64,000 bases of DNA from Perkinsus chesapeaki ATCC PRA-425 (Eukaryota; Protista; Perkinsozoa). Position 1 is the first letter of the stretch, and every line of letters starts with the position of its first letter. Below are positions 7,750 through 64,000 of this stretch, piece by piece. The stretch lies in contig JAAPAO010000043.1 of assembly GCA_013115145.1 (NCBI GenBank), positions 43,726-107,725 of the forward strand, in the 5' to 3' direction. Made by a program: the position numbers and the translations under genes. The notes under the pieces were generated by a model. It did not search any database. It was not told the DNA's origin and was given only the letters and a program-made list of their open reading frames with translations.

Positions 7750-9985
7750 ACAACTCATCACACAGGACGTGACGGACGCATGACCCCCTCCGGTCTCGGC
7801 CCCGAGTCCCGAAGGGAGCTCCGGAGGACCCCTGGTGGGCGACGAAACCGTGGCTTCTTGTAGCCACTGGACATCGACCAGGACCACGAGTAGGACGTAA
7901 CAAAGCCCTCCCTCGATCCTCCTTCATCGTCGCTCAATGGCGAGGACTCAGACAGCACATCCACTACCGGTCTGGTATCATGGCGCTCTGGCAGGGAAGA
8001 TACCGACGGTGGGGATCCAATTGTTGGCATTTGATAATAGGCTGACCCTCCTCCTCGCTGCAAGCCCATCGACCTAGCGCAGTGGGACTCCTGTGCGACC
8101 CGGCACCTGCTGAAGAGCAAAGACTACTACTTCACCGTGGAGACCTCCATTTACTCTGAAATGCCATCAAGCCTCTCGCGGAAGGCTTTGAGCTGTTTGT
8201 CTACTTCGAGATGGACCTCTTCATCCCCACGGGGCATCTCCGACCGATTCTTCCGCTCCAGCTCGTCCTCCAACTTCGCTACAGCCGCCTCCAGCAGCTC
8301 GATGTACTCCTTATGATGGCGTCGCTCGCCCAGTAGTCTGTTCAGGCTTGAAGAGAGTTCACCTCCTAACGGCTCTGATGCTTCGCTCCGCCGTAGAAGC
8401 CTGATAAAAGCGTCATCCTCGACGACACCCTAGACTGAATGACGATGCGAATGTGCCCCTCATGTCGGCATTTCTTCGAACCAATTGAAACTCCAATGAA
8501 TACCACCAAATATGTTGCTACGGTGGAATTCTTGTACCACCCTCCAGCCCAGTTTGCCATACACCTCGCTCTCCCTCCTGGAGACACTCAAGCTGTTCGC
8601 CGCCGACACCTCCATCTCTCGGAGTTCCCTCCTCAGCCTTGACATCTCCTCCTCCGCCTCCGCCAGCTTCCTCATCAGATTTTCCTGCCAACCTGTTATG
8701 GCGGCCCAATAAGTAATCACCGACCTTCTCCCGCTCCACTTCCCCCAAAGCGGCTTTCTCCAGTCTAGCCGCTTCTACAGCTTTCCGCATGACTCCGCCT
8801 TCGCTGTCTAAATTGAATATCCCAGCGTCCAACCTACCGCTCCCACCGCCAAGAGCCTCGGCCAGCAACGTCAGCGTGTCCACAGGGTCGCCCTTCGCCT
8901 CCTCGACTACTCGTAAAACCCCCGCGACCTTCTCCTCAGCACTCTGCCTTCTCACCCGTTCCACCTGTAATACAACCGAAGCAGTCCCGACAGAGGCGAA
9001 GCTTCCCGACCCTCAGCTGGCGGGTCGTAGAGCCCAGTCGAGCCACCAGGCGTTCCCGGTCACTTGTCTGTTTATTCAACTCGGCTTGGGTGTCCGCCAG
9101 CTTACAATTGAGAGTTAGTCGCTCTGCGTTCAAGGCTACCGAGACGGTCTCGATCACGTAAGTATCCAGTGCTCACCCTCAATACGCTCGGCAGCAGCTG
9201 ATCCAGGGGACGTGCAGACAACGGCGGTCGTCCTCCTCCTTGGAGTCAGTCTGCAGGACCGGGCTGACAGGAGGGGGGCCGAGCGATGCTATCGAAGAAA
9301 AACACCGATAAGACATATCCGCTATTTTCTGTACCGTTGGCTTTCCCGCTTTATCACGTGCCTCCTCCACCACACCGCAGTCCCCCAGCAACTGGCGCTG
9401 CCTCAGTTTAGTCCTGGTCTGGGCCTCCACGAGACGTCGCTCCAGCTGAGCCACCTCTGCGTCCAGACATGCAGCAGATGAAGCGTAGTGCCGTGAGACC
9501 ATGGGCATGCAAATAACTGGAATAATGATTTCGGTAGGAGCCCCCCTCAGAACTCAAGCGGCGGGAGGCTGCGAGAACCACGAAAGATGCCACGGATCGA
9601 GGGCTTGTCTGGACCAACAGACAATTGTACAATGGAAGAAGATATATTAGGAATCAGCAGCACGGAGGCGAGGTGGCTTGTGAGGGTCGCGTCAGAGAAC
9701 TAGATTCGATACCTGAGAGATAAAGGTGGGGAATGAGTGGCGCAGCCGGGGATGGAACCGGGGGACCACACGGAAGGACAGCACGAGCCTTAACGGACTG
9801 AGCTATCCCACCTCGTCCTCCTCCGCGAATGTCCTCCATGGAGTATTACACCTCATTATGTCGACCCAATCACGCGGCGGATGACAAACGAATTTCAGCA
9901 GATTCTGTCTTCGACAATATTGCAAAATAAAGTACCTGAAATCGGACAGACCATCCAAACTGAACGCCTCAAGCCACGAGGCCAT
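7750..9985 (-). CDS. Hypothetical coiled-coil protein (multi-exon, boundaries approximate)
   Basis: A series of ORF segments with heptad character (LDAEVAQLERRLVEAQ; KLADTQAELNKQ; RKLAEAEEEMSRLRRELREME) bounded by GT/AG sites. Confidence 0.45.
9738..9812 (-). pseudogene. Full-length (75 nt) degenerate tRNA-like sequence at the start of an intron
   Basis: GGTGGGA-TA-GCTCAGTCCGTTAAGGC is a D-arm/A-box remnant and CCCGG-TTCCATC-CCCGG-CTGCGCC-A is a T-arm, acceptor strand and discriminator. The anticodon arm is unpaired and the T-loop G is mutated. Confidence 0.7.
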
Positions 9986-9998
9986 CTCGCCAGGCGTG

Positions 9999-12209
9999 CT
10001 ACTCGGGGATCGAATCTAATGAGGGGGATAGAACGAGAATTCGACTAGATTGATCTGCTATTAAAGCGAACGAAGACATCAGGAAGAATCCTTTTGTGAA
10101 CATATAATGTTCCTCTGTGATGCCACCAACCCAAACCGAATAAGAGTAAACCTTCCAATACGACCGAGAAGAAATGATTCCCCCAAGACTTACAGGATGT
10201 TCCCCACCACCACAGCTCCCACTGTAAAGGCAATCACGGTCCATTCTCCATTAACAAATGGAGCCCCCAGGATGAAACAGATGAACACTGATGGTGGCAG
10301 AAGGAGAATAGTACACCCCCAGAAGCCCATAGGGATCGTATAAGGCCGCCAGATACTCGGGTTCATATACCGCAGGTAGAGGAACGCCGAGAACTCGAGG
10401 AGCTCGGCCAGGCAATACCTGAGATCATTCGATTGGCTTCCAAAGCCGAAAGATCCGATTTCCGCGATCAGGCAACGAAATAAGGAGGCTTTCCGGAGCC
10501 GAGCTTTAACGGCTCCTCCACACAAGTGCTGCTAAGCATTCAGGTATACACCAAAATGGTTCCCATGACCCCCCCAAAACCGCTTACACACAGTTGAGCA
10601 GCTCCACTATGTCCAGGAAGTCCAAGGTGGTGAGACAGAGTATCACACAGAGCTGGAGGCATATCGCGAATGTAGGGGTCTCGTGCTTATTACGGTAAGC
10701 CAGCTTCTCAGGAAGCCACCCATGCTCGGCCATCGCCTAATAATAAATATTAACTTCGGATGCATTTTACAGAGTTACCTGAATCTGATACGAGTCCGAA
10801 GACATCTCCGCATGGTACTGGCCTATATTAGACACGACTGCCGCCAGGACCACCCACCCTCCCAGAAACCCTCCACCGACGTCATAGGCGACCTACGAGA
10901 TCACTAAACGGTCATACAGGTAGCTCACGCTTTACCTTGCCGAGGAAGCCGGCCTGCCAGGAATCGAAGGCTTTATCTCCCTCGAGGGCAAATGAACCAT
11001 CAACACCTGTGGCGATCCCTAAGGGCAATATATACCCGAGACAGGTGAGGCACAGTGCTAGCAACAATGCCTTAGGCATCGCCGACCGAGCGTTCTCAAC
11101 CTGGATGCAGACGTGATGGGTCGACGGATGATCGAGAGCTTACTTCTCCAGCCAGAGTCGATACCGAGTCCCAATAGTTTAAGTTCCAAAACAGCACATT
11201 GAGCCACTTGGTCCATTCCATATCGTGACGTCTAAGCAGCCAGTTGGAGGGGTCCACTTCAGGCACAGCCATAATGATGAAGACGATAAAGGGGGATAGA
11301 ACGAAACACATCATCACCACAGCCAACCACCCAACAACCTGAGGACCCCGATATCTCTCCATACCGTAATCCCCGTAATACCTTTAAGCCTCTGTAATTG
11401 ACATAGGTCAGACATAGTGTTAAAACCACAAGGACGACGTTATTGTACCTGTTCCACAATATTCCTCCCAATCCCAACCCGACCTTCTACTACAGTTTTT
11501 CGTTTAGTACAGGGAACGCTACAGCCAAATAGGTCATTAATAGGTGAGGGTAGATAGCATTATCAGTGGCCCCGGATAACCACGACCAAAAACCCTCCTG
11601 GAATCCCCAGTAGGGCCCGAAGGCTGCTGTCACCCACGAGACATATCTGGCACACTAAACTGCTCGACTGGGACAGAAGACAACTTACCCGCAGTTGCTC
11701 GGGAAGGTGCTGCTCATCTCAGCTGTGACAAGGGCCTCAGGTAGGCACCAAATGAAAGGAAAAATGAGGAACCCAAGCAGTGCCCAGAAGGGCCCACCTG
11801 CCGCTACCGCATCCTCAGTACCAAAGGGGCCACCTGAAGGGATATAACCCAGCCGTCTATTCCCAGTCAACAAGGTAAAGTAAGTGTAATGCACCGTTCG
11901 GAATGAAATTTGATTTCCGTGAAGAGGGATGGGATACTTACCCGAGACGGAGTAGAATATAATGGCCACAGCGCCCCAAAGGGTAAGAGGCTTCTTCCTC
12001 CCCTGCGGCTTAATCATATAGCTCACTGAGGGGGATGTAGGATGCACATTGAGCGGGCTTCGGATCTCCGATTCCTCTGCCAATATTGCCTGAGTCTCCG
12101 CAGCGTCACGTGACATGCTGCGGGCCCTCGGGCCTCCAGATAAGGCCCGATACGATTGCGAACGAGGCCCTTCTATGCCGGCGCCCGTGTGGTCTTCCGT
12201 ATAAACCAT
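9999..12209 (-). CDS. APC-family polyamine/amino-acid permease (PUT/RMV1/POT1-like)
   Basis: [16 protein letters not shown]|[60 protein letters not shown] and [10 protein letters not shown]...RPYTIP match this subfamily. Confidence 0.9.
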
Positions 12210-52467: not shown

Positions 52468-55205
52468 TCAATCTTTGCCCAAATACTCATACACACAGCT
52501 GAAGTCCTTTCTGCCGTGCCCTTTATCGCCAACACTACCATACAGCTCCCGACAGAAGGTGGCCACAGGTACCTCGAACTCGACCTCGAAAATATCTTCA
52601 TCCACATGCTAATCCGATCTCAAGCGCTTTAACCCGAATAACTTTACCATGCAATCAACCGCCAGCACATGGGAGGCAAATACCGTGACAGAGAGTGAGC
52701 AAACATGACATACCATCTACCCTTTCATGAGAGAATTTAACGTGAACTCCGAAGCAACCAAGACTTTGTGAAAAATGTTGCGGTACCTCAGCTCCGCAGC
52801 CCTCAGCAGCCGTCTTCGCCAGTCCCAAATCCTTGACCATGAGATCGACCATAAATCCCTATTGAAATCTTAGTCGTTTATGATGGTATCTCCACCTTAC
52901 CCCGCTGTACTCTCTATTAGAGGGTATATCCTTATCTAGGACACCTGGCACTGGATTGTAGGTATCCGAACTCCAGCATCGTCCAGTGGAAGCATTTACT
53001 ATCTCAGCAAAGACTTTTGGATCGACCCCCAGCGTCCTAAACACATACCAGTTACCACTGGTATAGAACAGATGAGCTGAGAACCCTATGCAGGCAATAC
53101 AACCACCGCCGTGATGATCATGACATGCTTCGATCTAAACGAGCATGTTGTTGGACAACAATTACTTCCTATCAGTCCTCCTATTCAGCTCAGCGACCCG
53201 GCATATCTTACCACTACTTAGTAGACATTCGGCTATTTCCGGACAACGTTTTCAAGGTAAAATAATAATAAGGTAAAATAGATATGCCCTTGTGAAGGTG
53301 GTGGCTAAAAGCAGCAGCATACAGCAGCCCATATCCTTTCCTACAGAGAATGCCTCGCTTGCTCGAGTACGTCATGCCCAAACTATCGAGAGAGCCTCTC
53401 TTTCCAACGCGACGGCAACAACTGGTAATGTTAAGCATTACAACCGCTTCGAATGAGGCATTCATAGAAGACCATAGAATTTAGTACCATCAATATGGCC
53501 AGTGATTCCGAGTCGACTTTTGAAACTTTGATGACCGCTACACAAAGTTTCTGTCCCCCTCAATCCAGTCCTCACTTTGCTAATCGGAAGCCCTCAGCGA
53601 CACCAAGCATGCTAGCAGCCAAAATGAGATTATTCGACACCTTAACAGCTTGGCCCATGCCAGCTCCACCGCAGTGCTTTGGATTTCCCATAGGCTTCAG
53701 AATCTCTACAGCGGTTTGGAAGTCCTCGGTACTATCAGCCCCAACCATAAACGTTAAAGTACCTACCGGGGATCGAACCCGCGCCCTTTCGCAGCAGCCC
53801 TACCCGCCCTCGCCGCTGGTACCCCTCCGCTGACTGGGGCGTCCACCATTTTATGGCCTTCGCCTTTAGCTGCAGCTATGACTGATTTGGCTGCTATCGG
53901 ATCGATTGTAGAACAGTCTATCAAGAATGATGACTTCTTCAAAAGGGACAGGATCTGAAGAATTATACTTTGGCATCAAGTTGGCGGCACAAAGGACAAC
54001 AATCCCAAGCACAAAGGGAATCCAGAATTTACAAACCTGCCAAATTTCAATACTAAGAAAATGGAGCCTGAAAAACTTGAGATCGAGTTGATTGAACATT
54101 GCTAGCTCAGGAGCGACCAGAAAAGTGGCAGAACTGACGGCGCTTGGAAAGCAGCAACATCCTGCATGGATCCCATCCATTCCACATTGGGGAATCCCCA
54201 ACCACCATCCACTTTCAAGAGGTCCATAGTTACACCTCTCAGCTGACCCGTTAACCACTCTTCGCCTTCTAACGAGCCTAGTTTGCCCTCCAGTGCCCCT
54301 AAAGCCACGAGAATGTTTCAAGTTTTTCTCAACTGGCGAAATAAGCCTTGTCTAGGGCAACACTCTGGCAGCGGCCCCATTGCCACTGTACCATTCTAGA
54401 AAACGATAGGACGACGAGATTGACGTATAAATATCAGACTACATGTTAAACTATTACGGTATCATTGTTAGCTATTGAGTGTCCAGTGTACTATCTACAA
54501 AATATATTCCACTTACCCCGCCATGGCCGGTATATAAATCAATGACATCTTGACTCCCCGGTACCATCGATATGATAACATCGGATGAAGCACAGAGATC
54601 CTCTAGACCCTCCGCCACTCTAGCTTCTTTGGCAGCTGCCTCTTGGACACCTGCAACACCACGACTATGCTAGCACAGAGAATAGAGTCTAACGGCAAGG
54701 CATCTTCAGAGTGAGGTATAGCGGTACTGTTCTACTGCGTGGAAAAATAACCACGAGAGCCTTTGGCACAGTAAAGATACCACAGACACCGTGAACGAAT
54801 AATGAACCGAGGTTGGGTCAGTTCATTTTTAGAGCTTCAAAGGATAACATCATCCTGCGGCCACAATAACTTATATTAACGGAAGGGACAAGAGTCTCCA
54901 AACTCTGTGACATTATTTGATTCAGCCTCATTCCCCACCTATTCTTGCGAGTATCCTTCAACAATGAGTTCATCGAGGAACTATACAACCACTTCACATC
55001 CTCCCCCGGGGCTGGAAACTGGCGGGCCCACATCACTACCTGCTGATCCAACCATCTTGTCGAACACTACTAAGCTCCTTTCAGCTTTCAGTAAGTTTCC
55101 TGCCATACCCGAGCCCATGTTACCAAGGCCAATAAAGCCAATTGATGCGAATCCTCTTTGGTGAGCACTTCCGAAGACCCTTCTGCAGCCAAGGCGGGCA
55201 AGCAT
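52468..55205 (-). CDS. HIBADH: Mitochondrial 3-hydroxyisobutyrate dehydrogenase
   Basis: [27 protein letters not shown]|[43 protein letters not shown] and [10 protein letters not shown]. Confidence 0.96.
53763..53803 (-). other. 41-nt intron made largely of a sense tRNA 3'-half-like fragment
   Basis: gtagggctgctgcgaaagggcgcgggttcgatccccggtag; removing it restores the conserved [11 protein letters not shown]. Confidence 0.75.
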
Positions 55206-55430
55206 GGTCCGAGCCGAAAAGGGCAAGCTCGAGATACGCCACGCTTGTTTTATCCTACCGCTCCCCCCGAGAAAGCAGCTTCAGCAATACAGAGGAATAC
55301 TGCCAAGAGATTACAACGCAATACCGAGTGACATGAAGAAAATTCAACACAGTCACGCCCCCAGCGACGGGTGAGCACCACCATCGACTTGGCCGATTTT
55401 CGACCTGGCCGAGAGACCTCTCGCAGCAGT

Positions 55431-56109: not shown

Positions 56110-56150
56110 TTCCGCCTGCCGGGATCGAACCAGGGTCTCACTCGCGTGCC
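56110..56150 (-). pseudogene. tRNA 3'-half-like fragment inside a putative 76-nt intron (56087-56162)
   Basis: GGCACGCGAGTGAGACCCTGGTTCGATCCCGGCAGGCGGAA; no matching 5' half found nearby. Confidence 0.55.
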
Positions 56151-58074: not shown

Positions 58075-59127
58075 ATGAGACTGCCGTATGTCGTTCTCAT
58101 CAAGCTGCTTCTATTGGTGAAAAATACTAAAGGGGCGACCAATATTGTCGGTGCTTCAAGTTACAGTCATCTTGCTGGAGAATACAAGGGCTCCGGCGAG
58201 TGTGACAAGCTACCGGGTCTTAAAGGGTTTCAAGTACATATCAAGGAGAAGGACTCAGGACTAATGGCCAACATAACTGCTGAAGGCTCTGGCTGGAGTT
58301 TACCGTTGGGGAAGCCAGTGCAGTTGAAGGAGTATCGCTATGAGGCGGTGCTAAAAAGAGTCCACAAATCCACCGAAATCCGCAAACCCACATTCTTTCA
58401 GTTGAAGGATGTATACTATAAAGGGAGGGGGAAAAGTTCAGTTGGTAAATTTATGAAAGACTTGTATGATAGTGTCGGATTCGATTATCAAAAAGTAACC
58501 CTTGCTAGGGATATTGTGATAGCTGAGGCTCCTGATGGAATAATAGTTGGGCTACATCCTACTAGAAATCCATTAAATTATGTTATTGAAGGTCTGATGT
58601 GCAGCTTCTCTTTGCCTAAACTTGGCTCAACAACAACTACTCAAACCTCAACGGAGTCGTCACAGTCTGAGAAACTCGAAAGACTGAAAAAGCGCAAGCT
58701 GCCGTTGGAAGCATCAGAGAGCAATGAGGGAGGGAGCGTAAAAAAACGTAAAACGACGACACCGACAGATTTCCTCCCCGACGGTTCATATGAAACAAAG
58801 AATGTTTGGGGACACTCTGACAAGGCTTTGGTCGATATCTCATCCAAATCGGGGGTCATCTGGTGCGGCATAAGCTTCCATGGCTCGGACAACGTAGATC
58901 TTCCTAAAACTGAACTAGAGCAAAAAGATGATGACTGCATGTATCCCAAGGCACCACCGACCAATGCTGCTGTGAAGACCATCACGTTTGTCTACCAGAA
59001 AGTTACCCCCAGCTGGAGCACACTCCGTATCTGTCGGGGACCTAAGGGAGGCTGGGAACTACAGATGGTGGATTCGTCAACCAGACTGCCATGTATGAAT
59101 TTGGAGCTGGATAGGAGGGGATCCTGA
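58075..59127 (+). CDS. Intronless secreted protein with paired KKRK basic motifs
   Basis: Signal peptide MRLPYVVLIKLLLLVKNTKG; two beta-rich modules joined by a T/S-rich basic linker. Confidence 0.72.
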   Translation: MRLPYVVLIKLLLLVKNTKGATNIVGASSYSHLAGEYKGSGECDKLPGLKGFQVHIKEKDSGLMANITAEGSGWSLPLGKPVQLKEYRYEAVLKRVHKSTEIRKPTFFQLKDVYYKGRGKSSVGKFMKDLYDSVGFDYQKVTLARDIVIAEAPDGIIVGLHPTRNPLNYVIEGLMCSFSLPKLGSTTTTQTSTESSQSEKLERLKKRKLPLEASESNEGGSVKKRKTTTPTDFLPDGSYETKNVWGHSDKALVDISSKSGVIWCGISFHGSDNVDLPKTELEQKDDDCMYPKAPPTNAAVKTITFVYQKVTPSWSTLRICRGPKGGWELQMVDSSTRLPCMNLELDRRGS

Positions 59128-59678: not shown

Positions 59679-61830
59679 TCAGACGCTTGCAGCGTGCTGT
59701 TGTGACTTGAGTTCCGCTTCCTCCTCGTCTCGTTGCTTCTGCTGTTGCTCTTGAAGTCTTTGCTGTCGAAGCTTGAACTGCTTCCGCACACCATCTCGAA
59801 CGCTATAGTGGATCTTGAAGCCGTATACACTGAGGAGAGAGTTGAATAATTAGCAAAACTGGAAAGGACTTACGTGGGCTCAAAGGGTAGGGCCAGTGAA
59901 GTGGGCCGAAGATGCGGATATGCCATCAGAAACATATGACAGAAGGAGCTTGCAAAGTAAGCTCCATCGATAACCTCCAACCTGATCAGAGGCTTATTGC
60001 TAATGTACTGTTTCGTCCAGTGTATTCCAGCTTGTAGCAAAGAGCCTTGACTATCGTCTAGACCAGTGGCGCGAATAGACCGAACAGTGTGTCAAATAGC
60101 AAAACGAATATAATTTTTTACATCAGCTTTCACAATATAACACTTCATTTCTTATACAGAAACTGCTTTTTTCTCCCACCGACTCTTTGCAATGAAATTG
60201 AAATTCACCACGGTGAGTCATGATACGTTCGAATATTTCTGCTATATAGTAGATTTGCCTACCTAGAACACCTACCTTGCTGAGCGAGGGAAGTAAACCT
60301 CATTACACCGCGGGCAGTATACCTTTGTACCGCACTGGCCGGGCCGATCATTGCCGTAGGGAAGCACCTAAAACACGCATGATTCCGAATTCTGTGAAAG
60401 CTCTTACCGGTTGCTTTGCCTCTTCACAATCCGCATTAGGGCACAAACCGTATGTGAACGCCGAGTACTTGTCGAGCATTGCTTGCATGCCCCGACTAGT
60501 TAATAAGAATCTGAAGGTGAAATCTACAATGTCTAAAATCTCATGGATGCCTTCTTCAGCTGTTCCCAGCGATTTCATCGTCGAATGTTGGGAGAGACGA
60601 CTTCGAATAATTTTCTCGAAAAAACGGATGCGACCACAGGCTTACGTTTCAACAATAAGACACTAAAAGCTGCACAATTTGAATCCGGAAGTCAAAAGGA
60701 ATAGCTGATGTTAGGGCACCCAGAAGGAATGCACGAGATGCTTCCTTCAGGTCTAGGAATATATTATCCAGCTAAATTCCCATTAAACCTCTGCAACGAG
60801 GATACTGTTACATCCGCGACGGACACATTTATGTGTGAAGGCTAGATGACCCCCTCTCTCTAATGAACCGACGATGGTCGACCATCTTCGCTGACCGTTT
60901 GGTTGTTGAAGCCCTCAAAACTCCTCTTGGATTGATTAATCCAATCCTCACCTTGCATGAATGAGACCATAAAGCATTTGCGCCGCATTCTCGATTGCAT
61001 CTTCCTTTGCGCTGTCCAACTGACCGCTATCCAGCTCCTCATCCTCTACAGCAATGTTAATGAAATAACGGAGAATACGGTATGAAGGCTCACCAGCATC
61101 TAGTATAACATTGAGTGCATGTTCATAATACGGTACGATATCTCGCAGGCCAGTGAGGTTAAAATCATCAAACACGTAATCTTCGTCAACCTCTACAAAG
61201 TATCTGCCACAGCTGAGAGCTCAACGTCGCCATGAGCACTTGTTGAAAAGATACACACTACAGATGTCTGGAATATATAACGTTTTAATAATACTACTAT
61301 CAAGCACATCAGATATGCTATACAATGTGCGCAAATCTTAGTTATCTCCCGCCGTAGAGCGGTACGGGCTGCAAAAATTGGACGGCAAATGTTCTTTTAC
61401 TAGAACCACGCAATGACATATCGATCACCCGTTTCATGAGCCGTTTCATTATTATATTTGGTACAATATCATTTTATTATTATCGACTCCAAATGCACGT
61501 AAAATATTATATCGTACATTACTTTCCGATACTTTTATTTCTGTGGAACTTCATCATAAACATACACAGCGGAGACCTTAAGGTATCCGTCATTTGGCCT
61601 ATTCCAGAGCTCCAATGTGCGATTATGCGCTCCTTCTCAGTGTTGCCAATAACCGCTTACTCATTTCCTTTGCATCGGCAAAACCATTCAATCCAGCTGA
61701 CTCCTTCATCTTCACTCAACCCTAGCGATGCCTGCCAACAACCAACAATACTCCCCCTACAGAGTCTCATTCACATCACCTCATCTGAAAGGCCCTCAGA
61801 ATCGCTCTTAGACAAGCCACCACCTGAACA
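59679..61830 (-). CDS. CSNK2B: Casein kinase II regulatory subunit beta (start uncertain)
   Basis: [14 protein letters not shown]|[17 protein letters not shown]; [12 protein letters not shown]|FLLTSRGM; CPNADC; and the C-terminal VYGFKIH. Confidence 0.95.
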
Positions 61831-62063
61831 AGCATTCTTATGCCGTCCGATAGCGGCTCATTTCGGAGAATGCCGCCGTTCAGCCAATATCTTTCTAAAG
61901 TGCTGATAGCGCTCGAGTAGGATATGGATTGTAAAGTAAAGAGGTGGCTACTAGTTGCTTGAAGCAAGCATCACAGCTGCCCATTTTCTAACCCTCGATT
62001 GTTTCTAAATCGTTAAAGTATAATTGAAATAACGAATATCGTCCTTCAACTAGTGCCTAACCT

Positions 62064-62621
62064 ATGGCTAGCTACAAGAACGGGGAGAAGGCCTCTCTAT
62101 ACAAGGAGGACTCCATCTTACCTCCTGCGTCTCGAAGAGCCATTATTACAGTGAAATCGAGCAACAGGAAGCTACTGCAAAGGAACTCCGCTAAGGCAAG
62201 CAACTCAACTCCACATTTAGGATCAACAGACACATTGTCGGCACAGCAGTTGAAACTAGAATCTCATTTTCTTGCCACAGCGTGCCGTTGCTCGAGCCTT
62301 CGCCGAAAAACTGATATTCTCGCAGTCAAGAAGGATCACCTACGGATGACCACCATACTTCAACGCTTAGCTTCAAACACAGCATTATATGCCGGAGCAC
62401 CAAAGCAAAAGCTGAATTTCGACGGGAACCCGAATTTATTGGCAGACCACACTCGAAGATTCACTATTGGGAGCAGGACTATGAAAACGTATACGTTGAG
62501 CAACGACGAGGAAGCCGGGAATTCGTCAGAAAACTTAGTCAGCCCCCACCCTACGCCACCATGTGATGAGCACCTCAAGTTGAGATTCAAAACTACCGTA
62601 GATTCTGAATGCCCCTATTGA
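62064..62621 (+). CDS. Possible hypothetical ORF (may instead be antisense to the LRR gene 3' region)
   Basis: 185-aa ATG ORF only; no motif. Confidence 0.2.
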   Translation: MASYKNGEKASLYKEDSILPPASRRAIITVKSSNRKLLQRNSAKASNSTPHLGSTDTLSAQQLKLESHFLATACRCSSLRRKTDILAVKKDHLRMTTILQRLASNTALYAGAPKQKLNFDGNPNLLADHTRRFTIGSRTMKTYTLSNDEEAGNSSENLVSPHPTPPCDEHLKLRFKTTVDSECPY

Positions 62622-62699
62622 AGCTTCCTTGCCATTAACGACAAAGATTGAGGAATCCCTGATTAACTCAAGATGCTTTTACTTAGGAGTCGTCCAGTA

Positions 62700-64000
62700 C
62701 GAGCATCACACCGTCAAGAAGGAGCCCCCACTTCACGTTCATCACCCAGATGAATGTGCTAGAATTGATATAGAAATTATGGGGAACCTCACAAGTTCAA
62801 CCAGGAAGGAAGTCGCCGATCGTCAGCTTCCTAGTGCTACTGCCCCATGCCCTCCCACCTTCAGTTTCCCTTTTCGTGCTGCAACTGCATCCGCCAGGAC
62901 TTCTGCAGATATATCACTAAGTGCATGATTAGCGTTTAGATAGAGTGATTCTAGAGTAGTGTTGTCCTCCTTAAGGACCTGATAGAGGATAAATCCAATT
63001 ATATAATTCAACACCATTAATCCAACATCATAATTGTAGATTATCAAAGCCATGTACTAGATATCAAAACTCTAGCTCTAGCATCTAGTTCATAGGGTGC
63101 AGCAGCGCAGAAGGTAAAGGACGACTTTGCAATTCTTCCCCCAGGGATCTATCCCAGGATCCTGCGCATCCCATTCTGGGCTCTTCACTTCAACAACTCG
63201 GGAAATATACAGCGCGATCCCTGCAGCCAGCTAAGCACCTCATTGCTTAGTAAGCCACCCGATCATGCCAGAACTACGCTGCCTCAGTCTTGAGATGGCG
63301 CCCGCCATAGTGGACAGTTTTTACGCACAGTGGACCCCGCTCTCCAACGAGGTTGCCCCAAGTTCTCAACCATTCACTCAATTCTTTATGTAACGAAATG
63401 CTGCACAGAAAAATCATTCAATATTAGTATACAACTTCTCTAGTTAGTCGGGACTAGTAAAATGTAGCAACGACAATGATTGCTATGATTCCTCTTCTTC
63501 TTCCACTGTTCCCTGCCAGCCCACAGTCACACAGCCAATCATAGGAGAGAAAGCAAAAACGCTCGAAAGGTAATCTGTTAATGAATTATTCTCTTCTTAT
63601 CAAATCCATTCCTCCTTCCACTACAACTGCCTGATACAGCAAGCCCCTCCTCAGCCGCAGACCCTCCTTACCTTGGCCAATTTCGCAACTCCTTGATCAG
63701 TGAATTTATTCTTCCTCATCTCCAACAGTCGCAGCTTATTATTAGTCTTCAACGCCTCAGTAATGGACTCTAAAGAAAGTCGCAATCCAAAGGTCCCGGG
63801 TTCGATCCCCGGTAGTGGCACCTAAACCCTCATCGGTCATATTGACTCCAGATATCAGCAAGGTCTCTAACGGATGACCGTTGCCTGCCCGACCAAGAAC
63901 CTGATAGAGGACTCACCAGTGCAAGTGTGTTACTAGTGATACGGAGGAGGAGATATAATAGAAAGGAGTTTGATAGGAAATATGCTACTAGTGATACGGA
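62700..64000 (-). CDS. RNI-like leucine-rich-repeat protein, partial (5' end outside window)
   Basis: Spliced LETLLISGVNMTDEGL|ESITEALKTNNKLRLLEMRKNKFTDQGVAKLAK|VLKEDNTTLESLYLNANHALSDISAEVLADAV. Confidence 0.8.
63779..63821 (+). pseudogene. tRNA 3' half (perfect T-arm) forming most of a 52-nt intron of the minus-strand LRR gene
   Basis: TCCAA-AGGTC-CCGGG-TTCGATC-CCCGG-TAGTGGC-A-C has a 5/5 T-stem, a canonical T-loop, a 7-nt acceptor strand and a discriminator. Confidence 0.8.
63931..64000. repeat. Direct repeat TACTAGTGATACGGA, 55-bp period, running off the window end
   Basis: Copies at 63931-63945 and 63986-64000, inside an LRR intron. Confidence 0.6.

Follow-up and report, generated by a model that had tools for sequence, protein, structure and literature searches.

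The window, as we call the whole 64,000-nucleotide (64-kb) stretch of Perkinsus chesapeaki DNA under analysis (the last 64 kb of contig JAAPAO010000043.1, assembly GCA_013115145.1), ends in a minus-strand gene for a protein with RNI-type leucine-rich repeats (LRR), which hosts the intron at 63770-63821 (Table 1). The genes follow one another in the order LRR, CK2beta, two unnamed genes, Fer2 and HIBADH, and P. olseni mirrors this arrangement, so that the LRR genes compared below are orthologs. The orthologous proteins of P. marinus (P0002) and P. olseni (P0014) carry ~250 additional N-terminal residues that include a 2Fe-2S ferredoxin-type region; the P. chesapeaki LRR/2Fe-2S-domain gene therefore runs off the contig end. 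A homolog search for an outgroup returned no ortholog of the LRR gene outside Perkinsus. Tandem Repeats Finder reported nothing for the repeat at the contig end, and for the ORF at 58075-59127, near the LRR gene, no ortholog was found outside P. chesapeaki. In the public annotation, the LRR exons are merged with the casein kinase II beta gene that lies downstream, giving a single product of 385 aa whose start is the ATG of MTDEGL; in P. olseni, LRR and CK2beta are two separate genes. The product of a neighboring ORF is named 'hypothetical protein FOL47_007348 [Perkinsus chesapeaki]'.

Inspection of a contig assembled from RNA run X1 reveals that exactly 52 nt are skipped between 63769 and 63822 (CT..AC on the plus strand), and contigs from two DNA runs of the same organism (X3 and X4) retain the segment and are collinear across it. 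Because the RNA contig skips what the DNA runs contain, 63770-63821 is an ordinary, real GT-AG spliceosomal intron of the P. chesapeaki LRR gene, with RNA evidence for its splicing in the form of one assembled contig from one small run. On the minus strand, the exon ...GGT TTA G is followed by the intron GTGCC...TTTAG and then by the exon AG TCC ATT.... Removal of the intron restores the reading frame as ...NMTDEGL / (E)SITEALKTNNKLRLLEMRKNK..., in the correct 28-residue LRR register, which confirms the frame MTDEGL-E-SITEALK proposed in the initial annotation. The same RNA contig contains a second joint, from 62976 to 63670, where 693 nt are skipped. Retention of 63770-63821 as alternative coding sequence is ruled out by stop codons and by the lengths of 52, 74 and 76 nt that this intron takes in the three species.

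Table 1. Coordinates, strands and supporting observations for the features of the host gene, its tRNA-like intron and the other B-box relics of the window.
Feature	Position	Strand	Support or remark
Spliceosomal intron, 52 nt, GT-AG, phase 1 (Glu codon split G/AG)	63770..63821	-	RNA contig joint, frame, orthologous introns
Upstream exon VLGRAGNGHPLETLLISGVNMTDEGL	63822..63900	-	sequence and frame
Downstream exon SITEALKTNNKLRLLEMRKNKFTDQGVAKLAK	63672..63769	-	sequence and RNA joint
Next intron, 693 nt, control	62979..63671	-	RNA joint; no sequence in common with orthologs beyond chance
tRNA-like 3' part: anticodon-stem 3' strand, variable loop AGGTC, T-arm, acceptor-like TAGTGGC, A at discriminator position	63786..63820	+	sub-threshold partial Rfam tRNA alignment
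Perfect T-arm CCGGG-TTCGATC-CCCGG, 5-bp stem	63796..63812	+	sole perfect T-arm within 64 kb
Exact Pol III B-box consensus GGTTCGATCCC, antisense to host gene, core of the block conserved in three species	63799..63809	+	
TTTAG, exon-end copy (codons GGT TTA G)	63822..63826	-	orthologs ATTAG, ACTAG
TTTAG, intron-end copy (acceptor)	63770..63774	-	orthologs GGCAG, GTCAG
Sense-oriented exact B box (53769-53779) in 41-nt putative intron of HIBADH-like gene	53763..53803	-	
Sense B-box relic, then T-run, upstream of Fer2-like gene	56121..56131	-	
B-box-like site, 1 mismatch, in ~110-nt putative intron resembling a decayed full-length tRNA	9749..9759	-	
Fifth B-box-like site, 1 mismatch, 7 nt ahead of putative acceptor AG	10006..10016	-	

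Read along the plus strand, the intron has the sequence TCCAA-AGGTC-CCGGG-TTCGATC-CCCGG-TAGTGGC-A-C, with tRNA-like spacing of the B box and T-arm to the variable loop and 3' end. The initial annotation described this segment as an antisense tRNA 3' half with a perfect T-arm. The T-arm is indeed perfect and without a second in the window, where Markov simulations average 0.33 such arms and reach 2 at most, but the reading as a whole tRNA fails: ARAGORN with default settings finds no tRNA in the 64-kb window or in the comparison loci L001-L006, and the Rfam tRNA model applied to a 121-nt stretch yields a partial alignment of 17.8 bits, compared with a gathering score of 29. That is to say, with no full cloverleaf by ARAGORN and a sub-threshold Rfam score, 63770-63821 is not a functional tRNA gene. 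Relaxing the ARAGORN thresholds produces 35 hits at 80% and 236 at 70%, mainly noise. Rfam returns nothing for the whole window, either at the gathering threshold or at E<=10, and nothing for loci L002 and L005.

An A box and D-arm are absent from the 63770-63821 relic, as the region upstream on the plus strand is a coding exon of the host gene, and the T-arm region is the one part of the relic that is recognizably tRNA-like. The sequence supports derivation of the core from a former tRNA gene, of which it represents the 3' part, oriented antisense to the host gene. At <=3 mismatches, the 34-nt core has a single copy within the window, and a 22-nt word covering the T-arm and acceptor strand has one exact match in metagenomes, which is itself not a tRNA gene.

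The route to the orthologous introns led from a 40-aa exon query to the P. marinus ortholog, from there to two P. olseni orthologs and then to their DNA, giving a comparison set of three species (P. chesapeaki, P. olseni in two assemblies and P. marinus) that represent two deep lineages. The corresponding intron measures 76 nt in P. marinus (L002:7847-7922) and 74 nt in both P. olseni assemblies (L005:4612-4685). Its position is identical in all, between the first and second bases of the codon directly after ...MTDEGL, with a phase common to the three species, and the antisense B box is present in every orthologous intron, including those of both P. olseni assemblies. At fourfold-degenerate sites of the flanking exons, 2/40 are identical in all three species, and pairwise identities of 17-35% indicate saturation. 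The intron is old, since the same codon, the same phase and the B box recur in three species whose fourfold sites are saturated; this comparison shows that the intron and its tRNA-like core already existed in the last ancestor common to the three species. The initial annotation had pictured a captured tRNA that immediately serves as an intron and had suggested mapping its presence or absence across species. With the intron and B box of P. olseni and P. marinus at this codon and phase as well, hence present in all three species compared, that picture does not hold. Across the LRR and CK2beta genes, all intron positions compared are common to the species, with no turnover.

Inspection of the orthologous introns for shared sequence reveals a longest three-species word of 12 nt, GGGGATCGAACC on the gene strand. 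In shuffled controls the longest shared word averages 4.05 nt with a maximum of 7, and 0/300 reach 12 nt. Two further introns of this gene, taken as controls and with lengths of 693/241/283 nt and 519/175/261 nt in the three species, share words of 6 nt at most, which is the shuffle level. The 12-nt word has thus been kept while other introns and fourfold sites were randomized, which argues that the core is under constraint. The intron alignment contains ~20 nearly invariant positions, AG[GA]TCCC[GC]GGTTCGATCCCC in the tRNA sense, and the orthologs of 74-76 nt have additional unconstrained sequence on both sides of this block. As an unbiased check, exact matches of >=12 nt were collected across 16 kb of P. 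chesapeaki-P. olseni synteny, with non-coding status judged by eye. Four collinear exact matches fell outside coding exons, and two of them are the B boxes of the 63770-63821 and HIBADH introns.

Some 20 nt centered on the B box have thus stayed nearly constant, whereas the remainder of the intron, the other introns of the gene and the fourfold sites were randomized. The P. chesapeaki intron would have shrunk to near-minimal size around its constrained core and so come to look 'made of a tRNA half'. Short introns in the window span 40-52 nt; a block of ~20 nt together with the splice signals nearly fills such an intron, which would produce the tRNA-half appearance.

The P. chesapeaki copy has two further properties, a perfect T-arm and a boundary at 63820, which are not predicted by simple long decay outside the B box. 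In run X4, two DNA contigs match the locus up to exactly 63820 and then diverge, and depth over 63601-63800 is ~1.45x the single-copy level in both DNA runs, so that the tRNA-like part, up to and including the discriminator position, seems to be present at other P. chesapeaki loci too. The copy thereby seems 'fresher' than plain decay predicts, whether through conversion, a wider constraint or chance.

The junctions had been taken as signatures of insertion. TTTAG copies do stand exactly 52 nt apart in P. chesapeaki, as the initial annotation reported, and flank a 47-nt insert, but their interpretation as a target-site duplication does not stand. In the order P. chesapeaki, P. olseni, P. marinus, the upstream exon closes with GGT TTA G, GGA TTA G and GGA CTA G and the intron with TTTAG, GGCAG and GTCAG; the junction repeat in P. 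olseni and P. marinus is AG only, and the fifth base of the P. chesapeaki repeat is a lineage-specific synonymous base (GGT vs GGA). When junction repeats were scored, as had been suggested, microhomology at the seven RNA-supported introns between 58 and 64 kb measured 0, 4, 3, 1, 0, 4 and 5 nt, and TTTAG intron ends occur in 2/7 of them. The TTTAG repeat is within this normal range of 0-5 and not beyond chance.

The donor was likewise attributed to tRNA letters, namely the discriminator A and the first C of CCA. Inspection of the plus strand reveals A-C-C-T at the intron edge, without CCA, and ACC is the complement of exon-G/GT in all three species. The T-loop lies 14 nt from the intron edge in P. 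chesapeaki, which is tRNA geometry. P. olseni has 19 nt here and P. marinus 21 nt, and their donor hexamers (GTATTA and GTGAGA, respectively) fall outside the tRNA-like part. At these distances the donor of the sister species cannot be a tRNA 3' end, and the proposed origin of GT is not upheld. Both the TTTAG repeat and the 'ACC' would be by-products of the splice-site consensus.

Other introns or UTRs of the window contain similar tRNA relics, and GGTTCGATCCC occurs five times at <=1 mismatch compared with 0.95 expected, and 0/100 shuffles reach five. The five matches comprise the places named by the initial annotation, which counted four tRNA-derived introns in both orientations, and one more at 10.0 kb. 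B boxes at <=1 mismatch are thus present at every named place, but RNA support in this analysis extends to 1/4 of the named introns, that at 63770-63821. Orientation differs among the relics, with 63770-63821 antisense and those at 53.8, 56.1, 9.75 and 10.0 kb sense. The P. olseni HIBADH-like gene has an intron at the same codon as that at 53763..53803, with the same B box, and relics matching 56121..56131 sit upstream of the P. olseni and P. marinus Fer2-like orthologs; the pattern of a B box kept and flanks lost repeats at both loci. Rfam does not recognize the relics at 9.7-10.0 kb.

The 3' ends of the sense relics (upstream of Fer2-like genes in all three species and near 11232 of P. marinus L002) bear on the source of the sequence. 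From tRNA position 74 onward they run into T-runs or T-rich stretches that resemble Pol III terminator trailers, and the encoded CCA for which the initial annotation had proposed to look is absent from all of them. Because the sense relics end in T-runs and not in CCA, their source would be tRNA genes; the evidence points to these rather than to mature, CCA-tailed tRNA or cDNA, and the notion of a cDNA copied from a mature tRNA 3' end finds no support here.

To place the conserved block at the level of DNA or RNA, the strand, pairing and orientation of its letters are informative. The T-stem retains 5/5 pairs in P. chesapeaki compared with 3/5 in P. olseni and P. marinus, as read off the ortholog sequences, while the B-box letters are invariant. 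Folding the four orthologous introns gave energies at the level of shuffles (z -0.1 to -0.7). The strand that carries the exact consensus, with its invariant T54, is opposite to the transcript. Because an exact B box faces away from the transcript, stem pairing is not kept and nearby relics are oppositely oriented, the block would act as a DNA site, most likely a TFIIIC-type B box with no Pol III gene of its own. The B box comes close to a palindrome: on the gene strand it is GGATCGAACCC, which departs from the consensus at one position, and strand independence consequently speaks less strongly against a role in RNA than it might seem. On balance, we consider 63770-63821 to be probably an ancient intron that houses a selectively maintained B-box relic, with a TFIIIC-type DNA site as its probable identity.

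The splicing signals of so short an intron would restrict where such a site can lie. The purine-rich antisense B box would be near the donor because room for the branch point and pyrimidine tract is needed toward the acceptor, and the pyrimidine-rich TTCGATCCCC of the sense relics is 6-8 nt ahead of the acceptor, so that both arrangements would fit a B-box placement limited by splicing signals. A branch-point role of the block in 63770-63821 itself is ruled out by its position.

A function of the block in RNA, as a hairpin or T-loop-like module of the pre-mRNA or excised intron (a splicing enhancer, a site for a tRNA-handling protein or a source of small RNA), strikes us as unlikely. The near-palindrome places a similar word on both strands, and in the sense relics TTCGATCCCC occupies the place expected of a branch point and pyrimidine tract, both of which this idea would accommodate. 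However, the block is purine-rich on the 63770-63821 transcript, its distance to the acceptor is 31 nt in P. chesapeaki and ~45-50 nt in the sister species by a rough count, the hairpin loses two of its five pairs in P. olseni and P. marinus, folding is no more stable than that of shuffles, and it is the non-transcribed strand that carries the invariant T at position 54. We assign a similarly low probability to the absence of any local function, with the identity arising either through repeated ectopic gene conversion from many tRNA genes or through a recent overwriting of the P. chesapeaki copy by a tRNA gene. The >500 copies of five tRNA types in P. marinus (PMC3706591) would provide donors, and the fresher P. 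chesapeaki copy, with its perfect T-arm and the other loci that seem to match up to the discriminator, is as conversion would leave it. Yet a shared identity of 12-20 nt is very short for homologous conversion, which should also restore the stems and acceptor strand, scrambled in P. olseni and P. marinus, and the kept B box with lost flanks is found at the HIBADH and Fer2 loci too.

The remaining alternatives concern origin. Recent capture of a mature tRNA or 3' half as a cDNA, made CCA first, with TTTAG duplicated, GT drawn from discriminator and CCA and the insert an instant intron, is highly improbable. It would account for the exact P. chesapeaki geometry (T-loop, 5-nt stem strand, 7-nt strand, A, intron edge) and for TTTAG on both sides of the insert, but it is contradicted by an intron and B box shared at one site among three species with saturated synonymous divergence, by an exon-end TTTAG that needs the P. 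chesapeaki-specific synonymous base, and by an edge that reads ACC-T without an encoded CCA and complements G/GT in every species. The donors of the sister species, 5-7 nt further from the T-loop, the sense relics with T-runs and without CCA, and the occurrence of the 34-nt core only once in the window argue in the same direction. An ancient gain, in contrast, departs from the favored reading in origin only: a tRNA gene or fragment would have been inserted into coding sequence in the Perkinsus ancestor by break repair or as mobile tDNA and been spliced from the start, with later 5' decay around a kept B box. We regard this as possible but somewhat doubtful. Every relic seen turns its tRNA-like 3' end toward the nearest exon boundary: the distance to the donor of this intron is <=1 nt in P. 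chesapeaki and 6-8 nt in the sister species, and the sense HIBADH and 10.0-kb cases lie 6-8 nt from their acceptors; the 9.75-kb intron resembles a whole decayed tRNA with trailer, and no ortholog outside Perkinsus was found that would make the intron older than the relic. However, the limits that splicing signals set in very short introns would likewise be expected to put a relic close to the splice sites, the sister species have no junction duplication, all LRR and CK2beta intron positions compared are shared without turnover, and an intron-less state is seen in none of the sequences compared.

The favored reading, an old intron around a maintained B box, resembles several known systems in part. 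Extra-TFIIIC (ETC) sites and isolated B boxes of yeasts and mammals are conserved B boxes without a functional Pol III gene in Pol II gene territory. The intron at 63770-63821 has both properties, as its consensus B box has no associated Pol III gene and is itself conserved, and like ETC sites it combines an exact B box with the lack of an A box and cloverleaf inside a Pol II gene. Unlike ETC sites, it lies inside a tiny coding-gene intron and is visibly a relic of a tRNA gene. We therefore view it as an interesting variant of isolated B-box (ETC-like) sites, with a putative function deduced from its conservation. Relics of tRNA-derived SINEs (Alu, MIR and B2) in introns reportedly bind TFIIIC, and the candidate resembles them as Pol III promoter-bearing sequence in the intron of a Pol II gene and a possible landing site for TFIIIC. 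It differs in having no A box, no body unrelated to tRNA, no tail and no convincing target duplication, in a core that is single-copy in the window and in an age far beyond the survival of neutral sequence. Animal tRNA genes nest in introns of protein-coding genes, and here too tDNA occupies a host intron in either orientation, with the differences that the tRNA at 63770-63821 is dead, that the B-box region alone survives and that the intron is barely longer than the relic.

Introners, or introner elements, are described from Micromonas, Aureococcus and Amoebophrya (PMC7789003). The P. chesapeaki intron shares with them a recognizable non-intronic source and a short direct repeat over the exon/intron boundaries. 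In contrast to introners, it has no near-identical multicopy family within the window, no inverted repeats and no presence/absence variation among the three species, and its direct repeat is absent in orthologs and within chance. An origin as a SINE or introner is ruled out by architecture, by the single copy in the window and by presence in all three species. Within the genus, P. marinus has Dada DNA transposons, DDE elements of 4.7-11 kb inserted into tRNA genes, and its tRNA genes, which occur in large numbers, are places where DNA is rearranged especially often (PMC3706591), yet the 63770-63821 locus has nothing Dada-like. The literature searched contained no description of tRNA-like Perkinsus introns or of a tRNA-derived intron gain like this one, and no paper linking Perkinsus and TFIIIC.

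For work on intron origins the locus is a caution, in that a seeming fresh capture of a tRNA half with target duplication proved to be ancient, and its 'insertion signatures' are by-products of the splice consensus. If TFIIIC does bind the conserved intronic B boxes, Perkinsus introns would serve to house architectural sites of the Pol III type, a role not described before, and P. marinus is transfectable, which makes the Perkinsus system easily testable. A broader proposal, which we offer tentatively, is that Perkinsus may keep many dead tRNA-gene tails in tiny introns, in either orientation, as working TFIIIC-type DNA sites that affect chromatin, or the passage of Pol II and splicing, and that this class of introns perhaps began as insertions of tRNA genes in the ancestor of the genus. 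If so, Pol III promoter elements would be linked to both the origin and the maintenance of introns.

The relics considered here are dead tail portions of tRNA genes that retain the Pol III B box, and those that are sense-oriented lie on the same strand as their host gene. Inspection of the sense-oriented relics (Table) places the B box 6-8 nt before the acceptor AG, with endings up to the AG of CGGTAG, CGAGTAG and TGGAGCAG. The pyrimidine-rich T-loop/T-stem strand therefore falls at the place of the pyrimidine tract.

Further tRNA-gene relics occur outside introns in P. marinus. Directly after the stop codon of the leucine-rich repeat (LRR) gene lies a degenerate tRNA-Glu-like sequence, detected by ARAGORN at a relaxed threshold only, and upstream of the TruD gene a tRNA tail presents a perfect T-arm followed by TTTTTT. 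When the 22-nt word spanning the T-arm and acceptor was sought in metagenomes, the only exact match was in a JGI contig (L006), where a tRNA tail is followed by T8 within AT-rich DNA in which ARAGORN called no tRNA. Other eukaryotes may carry similar tRNA-tail relics.

Features and their coordinates (window positions unless a locus is named)
Feature	Position	Remark
Sense-oriented relic	53763-53803	
Sense-oriented relic	10006-10023	
Sense-oriented relic, P. olseni	L005 12360-12378	
tRNA-Glu-like sequence, P. marinus	L002 8815-8885	
tRNA tail, P. marinus	L002 11222-11260	
tRNA tail, JGI metagenome contig	L006 779-800	
17-nt match GTGTTGAATTTTCTTCA	~55334-55350; L005 11039-11055	exact, P. chesapeaki vs P. 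olseni
Fused LRR-CK2beta annotation	59679-63840	minus strand
Last exon of LRR gene	~62259-62339	tblastn
CK2beta exon pair	60952-61179	second version
Very high-copy repeat	63928-64000	inside intron upstream of LRR exon

Within 16 kb of synteny only four non-coding islands are conserved, and one of them is a 17-nt match in the spacer that separates the Fer2-like gene from the HIBADH-like gene. This match is not a B box.

At the contig end, the high-copy repeat has a summed word depth above 200,000 in each of the two DNA runs, versus ~100 for single-copy sequence, and small indels are found at the joins of many contigs within it. The repeat includes the direct repeat CCGTATCACTAGTA, with copies ~57 nt apart; Tandem Repeats Finder gave no report for the last 200 nt of the window. 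This high-copy repeat probably caused the assembly break. In the public annotation a single 385-aa product combines the last LRR exons with the casein kinase II beta (CK2beta) gene, whereas the two are separate genes in P. olseni, and the fusion is likely an annotation artefact due to the truncated contig.

Alongside the reference version of the CK2beta exon pair, a second version with 10-17 differences is present in RNA contigs and in one DNA contig of run X4. It is either an allele that has diverged or an additional copy, which is consistent with P. chesapeaki being polyploid or heterozygous.
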